From the NCBI GenBank assembly GCA_037379345.1, contig CM074515.1, positions 3,038,001-3,102,000 on the forward strand: a stretch of DNA of 64,000 bases. The letters are read 5' to 3'. A program made the translations under genes and the position numbers. The notes beneath the pieces are model-generated. The model worked only from the letters and a program-made list of their open reading frames with translations. It searched no databases and was not told where the DNA came from. This DNA is from Perna viridis. Lineage: Eukaryota. Of this stretch, positions 22,401 through 25,797 are shown in pieces (within the stretch, counting starts at the first letter, position 1; every line of letters starts with the position of its first letter).

Positions 22401-25400
22401 AAAAAGATGCTTTATGAAATAGAGGAACAACAATTTGGGCATGAAACAGGTGATATCCTGGTACCTTCAAAATAATGTAGCATTTCAGATCTTGTATACT
22501 GTTATTACTTGTAGATATATTTTTGTTGCAGTATTTATATATATATATATAATCAATGCACTGCTTTTATCTTGTATTTATACATGTATATGAAAAACAT
22601 TATTATCTTTATATCAAATAGTTATCTATAGTAAACACTTTATTTTCAAATGGAAGCTAAACTACTGATAATCCCAGATTGTACTGTACAACATGTTAAT
22701 CCATAGATGTAAACAATTCCAATTGAAGATAATAATGTGTTTCAATAAAAGATTCTGCCATGCTTAAGTTATTGCACTCATTTTTTTCAAGTGTATATCA
22801 ATGTATATTGCATGTAGCTTATGGGCTTTACCACTGTTGTTATTAATGTATGCATGCATTTAATGTTAAGCATTTTATGTAACACAGAAAAAAAAATGAT
22901 TTTGCATAATTTAACTGTATGGATCTCTATGATATAGTATCACATGAGATGATATAGTATCACATGAGAGAATTGATTGGGGAGAAGTATGACCCTTACT
23001 CTGTTGGGAATTAGGGGCAAAAGTAAAAATAAAAACTTTTTTTGTTTCCATACAATAACTTTAGTAATAGTGTATGAATCTCTAGGAAAGTACCACAAAG
23101 GAGGATTGATTATGGCAGCCATGACCCTAACCTGTTGGGAATGGGGATAAAAAGGGAAAAATAAACAGGTTTTTTTTTTCAGACAATAACATGAGTGGAA
23201 GTGTATAGATTTCCATGTAACTGCACTGAAGTGTTCCATGTCACAAAGTAAGGTTTGGACTAAAATTGATAAAGAAGTTGAAATTCAAATCCTTTTGAAA
23301 TTTTAAGACCTACTTATAAAACAAAAAGTGATGATATAGTACATGGAAGGATAAATTAAGAAATTGTTGCTTGCATTTAATCTTTGATATTGGGTCTTAA
23401 CAGGGTATTATCAGAATTTTATGGTGTGTCAAACATTTGATTACAATCCAAATTCAGAGCTGTATCAAGTTTAAATGACATTTCTATACTTTCCCCAACT
23501 GTTCAGGTTTTGTCTATGTTATAGTACTCTATTCCTCCCTGCTAAGCATTTTATTACACTTCAAGGGGATTCCAAAATTTTGCAATGCTTTTCTTACTAT
23601 TTTACAACAATTAACCTTCAAGTCAGTTCTAAAATCTGAATGTAAAGCATTTGTCCTGAGCTGTAGACTTTCTATGCTGTTTCAGGAAACTATGAACAAC
23701 AGGTCCATGGGATTAGCCAGAGTGAGGACGACTAGTTATTCGTAACATGTCTTACAATCCAATTATTTTTGCCTTTCAGTATCATAGGGCTGTATATTTC
23801 CTTCATCTTGTTGATTGGCCGAATCTTACGACTGAGCACATCAGGATTGATCGAGAGGATAACATACAACGAGTTACCATACATAGACAATGTTCTACAA
23901 CTCTGTTTAGACTTGTACTTGGTTAGAGAGATGGGAGAGTTTAGATTGGAAGAAGATATGTATGCCAAACTAATATTCTTCTACAAGTCAGCAGAAACAC
24001 GAATCAAATGGACACGATTACCCAACCGACTGATTATAACTGATGCTAAAAAGAATGATTAAAACATTGTACTATTGTACACCATTGTAGATAGTTATTT
24101 AATGCTGGCAGCTTATCAAGGAGAATAGATCAAGCTTGGCTTGCTCAGTTCTTATTTAACTTACTTATTTGAGATGATTATGTACTTGTGTTATGCAATG
24201 ATATGTTTCTAATAAGAACTATTTCAGTTCAGAGAAAACAGCATGACAACCATTTGTTATTGATTCTGCTGTCAGATTATAAAATAATTGAAGAATCTTT
24301 GTTAAATTAATTTTGTACAAATATGTCACATCCAGAGTACTTATCTACTTTTTAGATTTATCTTGTAACATAGAATTTTCTATATAATGAACAGGTAGAA
24401 TTTTATGCAATGTGAGACTTATATGAATGGTTGATACACAAGTAGAACATCAAAATAACAATTTAATTATTATTTAACATGATCAAGTATGAACTACGTG
24501 TAGTAAACATCAGTGTAGACGTTAATTGTATATTCTGTATGAAGTATAATATTATTTAAGCGTAACATGAATTACTTTCTAGTACAAATGGCTATACTAG
24601 TACATTCTTGCCAAATCATTAGTTTGTAAGTGAAATTCTGGTGAATTTGATTAAAACAGATTTTGAAAATATGTGAGTGGCAAACAATTCTAGAGGGATG
24701 GTATCAAGGGGAGATAAACCAATTAACGCTTATACAATTAGAGATTTGGGAGGTTGGGAATGACAGCCCTATTTTGTCTTTTTTTTCAAAATTTCCAATG
24801 TTTGACTTACCTCACTACTGGTATATATACAAAGGTTTTTAATATTACCTCCTCTTTTTTATGAATGTTGTCTTGTTTATTTGTATAAATGATTTGAATA
24901 CATGGTAGTATTTGCACTTACAAACATTTTCACTTCTAAAAAATTTGCCACAATCTAAATTTTGATTGGTGTAAAAAGTTTTTATTTTTATGGATAATGA
25001 ATGAATTTTATTGACACTAGTTCAATTGCTCAAAATGCTTTGATTTGTTTGTCAATTTTCTTTGCTTTGTTATTTAGATTTTCAGGTTCAGAAAACATTC
25101 ATTAATAATGTAATTTTAACCTTTTCATTTGATTGTATTGTATAAATATATACATTGTAATGTTTTGTGTATGTTCAGTTAGTGTTCTATTTTTATCTGT
25201 GTATTGTAGTGTAGTTATTGGGATTTTAGTAACCTAGCTATGTCATGTGCAATATACATGTTATTTTTACATTTAATGCTTCTTCATAATGTCTCTGGTT
25301 GTCAGTTGAACTAGTAATTAATTTGAAATCTCTTGAAAAATTTTAAAGATCTATAAAGTGGCTTGAAATGCTTGACATTAAAGGGAAGTTATTAAATGCG

Positions 25401-25797: not shown

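Follow-up and report, generated by a model that had tools for sequence, protein, structure and literature searches.

The 3′ end of the Perna viridis Piezo gene

We analyzed a 64,000-nt stretch of the Perna viridis genome (assembly GCA_037379345.1, contig CM074515.1, positions 3,038,001 to 3,102,000 of the forward strand; hereafter the window) that contains the 3′ portion of a gene for the mechanosensing channel Piezo. We consider it likely that this single Piezo gene ends in two tandem, homologous coding exons, A and B, that are used alternatively and that each supply the C-terminal part of the pore-lining inner helix together with the cytoplasmic C-terminal domain (CTD). Upstream of the pair, the Piezo exons lie on the + strand (window 17-19363) and are collinear in tblastn with Piezo isoforms of the mussel Mytilus edulis, which then continue into either A or B. 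Across the 723-Mb genome the terminal exon occurs in these two copies only, and an upstream exon occurs once. It follows that there is a single Piezo gene in which one exon is duplicated.

The last exon common to both forms ends in ...AACTATGG, with 19362 as its final base, and is followed by the donor gtaaga. Its reading frame runs to ...SFLSNY and then to GG, two bases of a split glycine codon. An intron of ~4.4 kb separates this donor from exon A, where a pyrimidine tract and CAG precede the first exon base (...tttgcctttcag, then T at 23780) and the frame closes with TAA at 24061-24063. After a spacer of ~1.5 kb, exon B begins with A at 25545, behind the acceptor ...cttattttcag, and closes with TGA at 25795-25797. 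The phase of both acceptors is equal, and the split glycine is completed as GGT by exon A or as GGA by exon B. The two peptides align without gaps at 42 identical residues out of 80 (53%) and 61/80 positives (BLASTP, E = 6e-31). The donor, the two same-phase CAG acceptors, the open reading frames, their stops and a hand count of 42/80 had all been proposed in an original prediction made from the sequence alone, and each is confirmed exactly. The pair thus consists of adjacent homologous exons of equal phase and near-equal length, and the stop codon of A bars B from every frame that contains A (Table 1).

Table 1. Features at the 3′ end of the Piezo gene, in window positions
Feature	Position	Strand	Content and basis
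Last common Piezo exon	about 19167..19362	+	Final part of the cap and first residues of the inner helix; from sequence and frame
Exon A, coding part	23780..24063	+	93 amino acids (aa) after the split codon, TAA stop; C-terminal part of the inner helix and CTD
Exon B, coding part	25545..25797	+	83 aa, TGA stop; segment equivalent to exon A
3′ untranslated region (3′ UTR) of the exon-A mRNA	24064..27011	+	~2.95 kb, encloses exon B; from contigs and orthology

Both exons encode the inner-helix and CTD segment

The Pfam profile PF12166 (298 positions) is matched by the last common exon at positions 160-217 and by exons A and B alike at positions 219-297, with scores of 108 bits for A and 135 bits for B. 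Either exon therefore extends the match where the common exon stops. Both exons also align to residues 2466-2544 of mouse Piezo1 in solved structures (E = 1e-21 to 1e-28), so that each gives a significant match to the end of the profile and to the structures, downstream of the common exon and in frame with it. Within this segment lie the pore-facing residues of the inner helix, the L2475/V2476 gate and the two constrictions, MF and PE, along with the CTD. The original prediction had described the exchanged segment as the inner helix plus the CTD. That description holds for the pore-facing residues and the CTD constrictions, but the boundary falls at mouse Piezo1 residue 2466, so that the helix begins in the common exon.

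The roles of these positions in gating have been described. Residues L2469, I2473, V2476 and F2480 face the pore, L2475/V2476 form the main inactivation gate and the MF site forms a secondary gate (PMC6349400). The inactivation rate is set by the hydrophobicity at 2475/2476, and polar substitutions at the MF site lengthen inactivation 1.6-2.7-fold (PMC6349400). In mouse Piezo1 numbering, the Perna viridis exon A has F (2473), I (2474), L (2476) and S-T (2484-85), and farther along T-Y replaces M-F, N replaces E2495 and A replaces P2536. Its exon B carries L-V at 2475-76, F-F at 2484-85 and Q at 2495, and keeps both M-F and P-D. At the gate and constrictions, exon B accordingly reads LV, MF and P-D, whereas exon A is clearly homologous but departs at these positions, with LL, TY and A-E.

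A comparison of 19 A-type with 16 B-type mollusc sequences identified seven columns in which the two types have disjoint sets of residues. These are, with the A-type residues given first, 2473 (F against L/A/M), 2474 (I against V), 2476 (L against V), 2481 (L/M against V/A/I), 2484 (S/A/G against F/I), 2485 (T/L against F/V) and 2516 (M against S/C/T/Y). All but one fall within 2473-2485, a stretch of the inner helix that reaches to its cytoplasmic exit, on or beside the hydrophobic gate. Of these, PMC6349400 names 2473 and 2476 as facing the pore, and 2476 also as one half of the hydrophobic inactivation gate. Judged by its residues, exon A appears to be a mollusc-specific, derived pore type and exon B the canonical type. 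Because the two types differ at the gate, and the Perna viridis exons also at the MF site, and because mutations there have published effects on inactivation (PMC6349400), it is plausible that the A and B isoforms gate differently.

Exon A is the dominant terminal exon in Perna viridis RNA

We placed Logan contigs of four Perna viridis runs, from four studies, on window 21000-26999; such contig assemblies drop rare variants. The donor at 19362 and the B acceptor at 25545 are 6,183 nt apart, and the stretch on which contigs were placed holds the B acceptor and not the donor. The runs carry the label 'RNA?'. Intron bins between 22600 and 23399 have a depth of 0 to ~3, compared to 31-55 across 23800-26800 in the four runs, and the near-empty intron beside a covered exon region identifies them as RNA.

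In each run, positions 23800-26800 are covered by one long contig (4.6-8.5 kb) without differences. Every one of these contigs starts at 23779 on the window, after a further 1.4-5.3 kb that lies off 21000-26999. In two runs, the loose sequence ahead of 23779 matches the final 30 letters of that shared exon, the last common one (...CCAACTATG); in the other two, the long contig also begins at 23779 and its upstream portion is unaligned. The one-base offset from 23780 corresponds to a G that is common to donor and acceptor. The junction 19362>23780, one of two that had been put forward for checking, is therefore real, since contigs from four studies begin at this point, in two of them with the end of the common exon before it.

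From exon A the contigs continue uninterrupted past its stop codon, through the 1.5-kb spacer and exon B, to 26738-26999 and beyond. Because of this continuity, exon B must lie inside the 3′ UTR of the exon-A mRNA. Exon A is the dominant terminal exon in these RNA samples.

A related mussel has the same layout. A 5.6-kb Logan contig from this species (L020), whose protein identity to the window is 96% for exon A and 89% for exon B, is a spliced mRNA in which nine upstream exons are joined to exon A and its stop, followed by ~2.3 kb of UTR, an intact exon B and poly(A). The nearest named relative, M. edulis, is 93% identical in A and 87% identical in B over 82 columns. The ~2.3 kb of UTR between A and B in L020 does not align to the window. 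Its 3′ end, where AATAAA is followed by 12 nt and a run of A, aligns to window 26922-27011; the window has AATAAA at 26994-26999, and its poly(A) site near 27011 is placed by this orthology. Between the exon A stop and exon B (24064-25544) there is no AATAAA. From the layout and end of L020, together with this lack of an intervening AATAAA, exons A and B use one common poly(A) site.

This arrangement modifies the proposal of two alternative last exons. The two maintained alternative coding ends stand, but they do not have separate 3′ ends: the exon-A mRNAs continue past B to near 27011 instead of ending at a proximal poly(A) site of their own, although contigs could miss a minor proximal site upstream of exon B. 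Joining of the common donor to exon A is seen in the RNA of four studies, and joining to both exons is seen only in the annotated isoforms of relatives. Exon B is a distal acceptor nested in the 3′ UTR of exon A, and the choice is one between a proximal and a distal acceptor within one terminal unit.

Both copies are under coding constraint

We compared the two exons across species by their nonsynonymous and synonymous divergence (dN and dS). By the Nei-Gojobori method dS is undefined for distant pairs, owing to saturation, and the closer relative L020 was used instead. Between the window and L020, exon B has a dN of 0.06 and a dS of 1.1-1.7, with 6/4/36 differences at the first, second and third codon positions, and its dN/dS against the nearest relative is ~0.04-0.05. 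Exon A has a dN of 0.02-0.06, a dS of 0.8 or more and 12/3/40 differences by codon position. In more distant species pairs, dN for exon B rises to 0.14-0.31 and dS is saturated, with the excess of third-position differences kept; third positions account for 36/46 differences against L020 and 47/74 in a more distant comparison.

A blastn comparison of window 19000-27200 with three relatives found exon-region similarity only at 23766-24062 and 25529-25797, two islands that extend from a few bases before each acceptor up to each stop. The spacer and the remaining 3′ UTR gave no alignment to these relatives. Within the exon pair, the acceptor AG, the phase and the position of the stop are kept in relatives, and constraint on the coding sequence is found in both copies across species. 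Drift in a UTR over such divergence would not keep a frame, which argues that exon B is coding, and by these measures selection on its protein is as strong as selection on that of exon A. The ratio dN/dS is well below 1 for both exons, in agreement with the view that two old copies have been maintained by strong purifying selection and that neither is decaying.

The duplication appears to predate the bivalve-gastropod split

The tandem order of A followed by an intact B was found in 11/11 mollusc sources examined, bivalves and gastropods alike. They include the window, the mussel relatives L009 and L020, Crassostrea (L003-L008), Tegillarca granosa (L013), Mya arenaria and a further bivalve (L014), as well as the limpet Lottia gigantea (L016) and the snails Lymnaea stagnalis (L018) and Aplysia californica (L017). 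In the two snails, both heterobranchs, the second copy is highly divergent, intact and common to both. One further contig (L015) has exon A and shows no B within 10 kb downstream.

In a maximum-likelihood tree of 63 sequences and 82 columns, in which many forks are unresolved, a branch with 97/94 support divides the labelled A and B sets, and a long stem lies between the two types. Within each set, the sequences of mussels, oyster, ark clam, heterodont clams and snails cluster roughly by species. The A clade also includes one cephalopod sequence and the nemertean Tubulanus. Because the ordered pair is present in both classes and the A and B clades roughly track the species, the comparison indicates that the duplication predates the split between bivalves and gastropods, and it may be older still. 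This split is Cambrian. The original prediction had called for a search for a conserved tandem pair in other molluscs, which found it in bivalves and gastropods; it was right that the duplication is old, but the pair is far older than had been supposed.

Piezo models outside the molluscs contain comparable arrangements. In the stick insects Timema genevievae (CAD7588074.1) and T. bartmani (CAD7448100.1), two tandem 40-aa copies of an inner-helix exon run from IIALY... or IIGLY... to ...VDRILQ, with a short read-through piece between them, an arrangement that resembles mutually exclusive exons for the equivalent pore segment. A partial model from the bdelloid rotifer Didymodactylos carnosus (CAF1285104.1) has two complete, divergent inner-helix/CTD modules in series, much like the Mya arenaria model, which suggests a tandem last-exon pair there too; the placement of the rotifer modules in the tree is unreliable because of their long branches. 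Together, the stick insect and rotifer models hint that duplication of the pore exon is recurrent in protostome Piezo genes.

Annotated isoforms of relatives end in either exon

Public annotation contains isoform pairs that differ as A and B do. Among the ENA models of M. edulis there are two such pairs, which represent two loci or haplotigs: CAG2248323.1 (1556 aa, A end) with CAG2248322.1 (1546 aa, B end), and CAG2206954.1 (1623 aa, A end) with CAG2206953.1 (1613 aa, B end). The RefSeq collection has a third in Crassostrea gigas, in which isoform X1 (XP_011438487.1) has 1019 aa and the A end and isoform X2 (XP_011438488.1) has 1009 aa and the B end. Within each pair the sequences agree fully as far as the junction, and the 10-aa gap in length between them is the A/B difference (93 versus 83 aa). 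The pair is thus present but unremarked in public annotation. For Perna viridis itself, no A/B isoform record was found in the collections searched.

Annotation pipelines handle the exon pair inconsistently, in that they pick A, pick B, split the pair or fuse it. The Lymnaea and Aplysia models take A, and the Lottia model takes B and skips A. In Tegillarca granosa the pair is annotated as two small genes, KUTeg_018938 and KUTeg_018937, and in Mya arenaria the model WAR12852.1 fuses A and B serially in one reading frame. Upstream there is another alternative event (window about 7551-10775), at which M. edulis isoforms that are identical through residue 866 diverge by 8 aa.

Proposed mechanism and alternative explanations

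We propose that the two ends of the channel would be produced by a choice of acceptor. When the donor at 19362 is joined to the proximal acceptor at 23780, the product is the major mRNA, which encodes exon A, stops at 24063 and carries B silently in a ~3-kb 3′ UTR with its end near 27011. Joining of this donor to the distal acceptor at 25545 would remove exon A and cause exon B to be read, with the poly(A) site unchanged. The stop codon of A would make the two exons mutually exclusive in the protein, and identical blades and cap would be joined to either of two modules, each made up of half an inner helix and a CTD. Because the stop of A and the common poly(A) site leave no junction past the stop codon, neither form would be an obvious target of nonsense-mediated decay. 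Under this proposal, the B junction would be used in Perna viridis, the choice would be regulated by cell type or stage, and the two pores would differ in function, for example in inactivation or permeation.

Several observations weigh against the use of exon B. Of the two junctions expected by the original prediction, 19362>25545 is absent among the loose ends listed for the Perna viridis contigs on window 21000-26999, and none of the contigs listed for the four runs begins or ends at 25545. The contigs are unbroken at this position in five assemblies (the four runs and L020), so that a path through the B junction is absent or rare there. All five of the Logan RNA-derived Crassostrea open reading frames (893-902 aa) end in A, in agreement with A as the major form. 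The annotated B isoforms of relatives are database models that may lack a basis in transcripts; RefSeq alternative variants normally require such support. Among RNA-derived short protein fragments, none from bivalves spans the junction of the common exon with B, in a collection whose length filter hides long open reading frames and whose 90% clusters merge isoforms. Likewise, a search with the oyster B isoform region, against cluster representatives only, returned no separate RNA-derived open reading frame that ends in B. Since the contigs are unbroken at 25545 in all five assemblies, the B isoform is probably minor or restricted to certain cell types.

The same observations would follow if exon B were an unused duplicate in Perna viridis, with only the exon-A channel made and B carried as a passenger in the 3′ UTR. 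Only the A junction is seen, the contigs pass unbroken through 25545 and the RNA-derived oyster proteins all end in A. However, such a passenger would have kept its frame, acceptor and stop in spite of a dS of 1 or more against the nearest relative (dN of 0.06; 6/4/36 differences by codon position), over a divergence at which the flanking UTR no longer aligns to relatives. It would also have stayed intact in all 11 mollusc sources and been annotated as the end of an isoform in two relatives, M. edulis and C. gigas. We regard an unused exon B as unlikely.

Alternatively, both isoforms could be made and be functionally equivalent, as might be expected from the many conservative substitutions between them (61/80 positives). 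The substitutions that distinguish the types are nonetheless concentrated where they should matter, with six of the seven disjoint columns (19 A-type versus 16 B-type sequences) within 2473-2485, and the two types are separated by a long stem branch. Moreover, redundant copies would not be expected to last since the bivalve-gastropod split. Equivalence of the two isoforms is, in our judgment, quite improbable.

A third explanation is that exon B is translated from a separate transcript, or as part of another gene, into a small stand-alone inner-helix/CTD protein. Nothing speaks for it directly, and it would explain the coding constraint without a visible junction. In every species, however, conservation starts exactly at an AG acceptor whose phase restores the split glycine codon, and the first methionine of B is residue 23, which is not conserved in the B exons of relatives. 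The annotated isoforms connect B to the common exon, and no contig starts near B among those listed. A stand-alone protein is thus very unlikely. Finally, conservation of the B region as an RNA element for regulation or localization is barely credible: B does sit in the 3′ UTR of the dominant mRNA, but its differences fall mostly at third codon positions (36/46 and 47/74), its peptide reaches 135 bits against the Pfam profile of Piezo, more than exon A does, and its frame and stop position are kept across mollusc classes.

We continue to favor a single Piezo gene whose tandem terminal exons are used alternatively. A fuller version can be put forward tentatively, as a possibility to which we give somewhat less than an even chance. 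The pair may be a regulated switch between two pores that molluscs, perhaps lophotrochozoans more widely, have kept at least since bivalves and gastropods separated, and in which the derived pore A is used in most cells and the canonical pore B in particular cells or stages. The resulting channels would differ in inactivation or permeation, and A and B subunits could possibly assemble into mixed trimers.

Comparison with other channels

Mammalian Piezo1.1 is produced by skipping of the lateral-plug exon. Splice variants of Piezo, among them tissue-specific forms of Piezo2 and the C. elegans PEZO-1 isoforms, tune the properties of the channel (PMC12934605, PMC12951647). The mollusc pair resembles these variants in that one gene would give rise to several channels by alternative RNA processing. 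It differs from them in the part that is changed: the variants affect the N-terminal blade, the lateral plug or loops inside the cell, and none of them is known to replace the inner helix and CTD, as the mollusc pair would. A study of a bivalve transcriptome describes one Piezo and does not mention isoforms (PMC11682238).

Full-text literature searches returned no account of any Piezo in which the inner helix and CTD are exchanged, and none of Piezo isoforms in molluscs. The original prediction knew of no description of such a pair, and this stands with regard to papers; the isoform pair itself, however, is already in public annotation, as C. gigas RefSeq X1/X2 and in the ENA models of M. edulis. 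Those pairs (X1/X2 and CAG2248323.1/CAG2248322.1) are orthologous to the A/B pair of the window, and they are database models without a description.

Tandem homologous exons for a pore-lining helix, with one included per transcript, are known from other channels. Drosophila Shaker has alternative 3′ exons that include S6, CaV1.2 has exons 8/8a for IS6 and insect para has mutually exclusive exons; in these channels, the exchange changes gating or inactivation. Mollusc Piezo has the same kind of exon pair, but it belongs to another family and fold, and it has two acceptors and one poly(A) site, so that the unused copy stays in the 3′ UTR of the major mRNA.

The vertebrate genes Piezo1 and Piezo2 offer a second comparison. 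Here too there are two versions of the pore module per organism, and the vertebrate pair differs in inactivation. Vertebrates doubled the whole gene, whereas molluscs doubled only the last exon and have the blades and cap in common. If the regulated switch described above is true, it would be a splicing-based counterpart of the division of labor between vertebrate Piezo1 and Piezo2.

Maps of Piezo gating and inactivation come mostly from point mutations in the inner helix and CTD of the mouse channels Piezo1/2. The mollusc pair would provide a natural experiment, in which selection has kept two complete versions of this segment on one otherwise identical channel. The two versions differ at pore-facing and gate positions (2473, 2476, 2480-2485, MF and PE). 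The layout also has a practical consequence. Because B sits in the 3′ UTR of the exon-A mRNA, assays of exon B are misleading: exon-level counts, probes and in situ hybridization against B pick up the A isoform, and a valid assay must be specific for the junction.

Other features of the region

In all four RNA runs, a contig departs from the window after 26317 into 255 letters (GCCTTTCTTTTTCTC...) that are absent from the window, and the bin around this point (26200-26399) has extra depth. We rejected a 3′ UTR intron at 26317, as there is no GT donor and the departing letters do not occur in the window. Possible sources of the departure are an insertion allele, a junction with a repeat and a chimeric contig.

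In the intron before exon A, a (TA)n microsatellite of ~30 bp occupies 19380-19411 and starts 18 bp past the donor of the common exon. Two short patches of the intron, at 21030-21134 and 21808-21936, are each matched in every run by short contigs that number in the hundreds, are 95-99% identical and add up to depths of thousands; the patches are probably pieces of an abundant, transcribed interspersed repeat. The mussel relative L009 has a 64-bp match, 87% identical, to window 20949-21011, and upstream of its Piezo end (L009:1-5973) it carries overlapping 119-aa open reading frames with a period of ~330 bp, which constitute an intronic tandem satellite.

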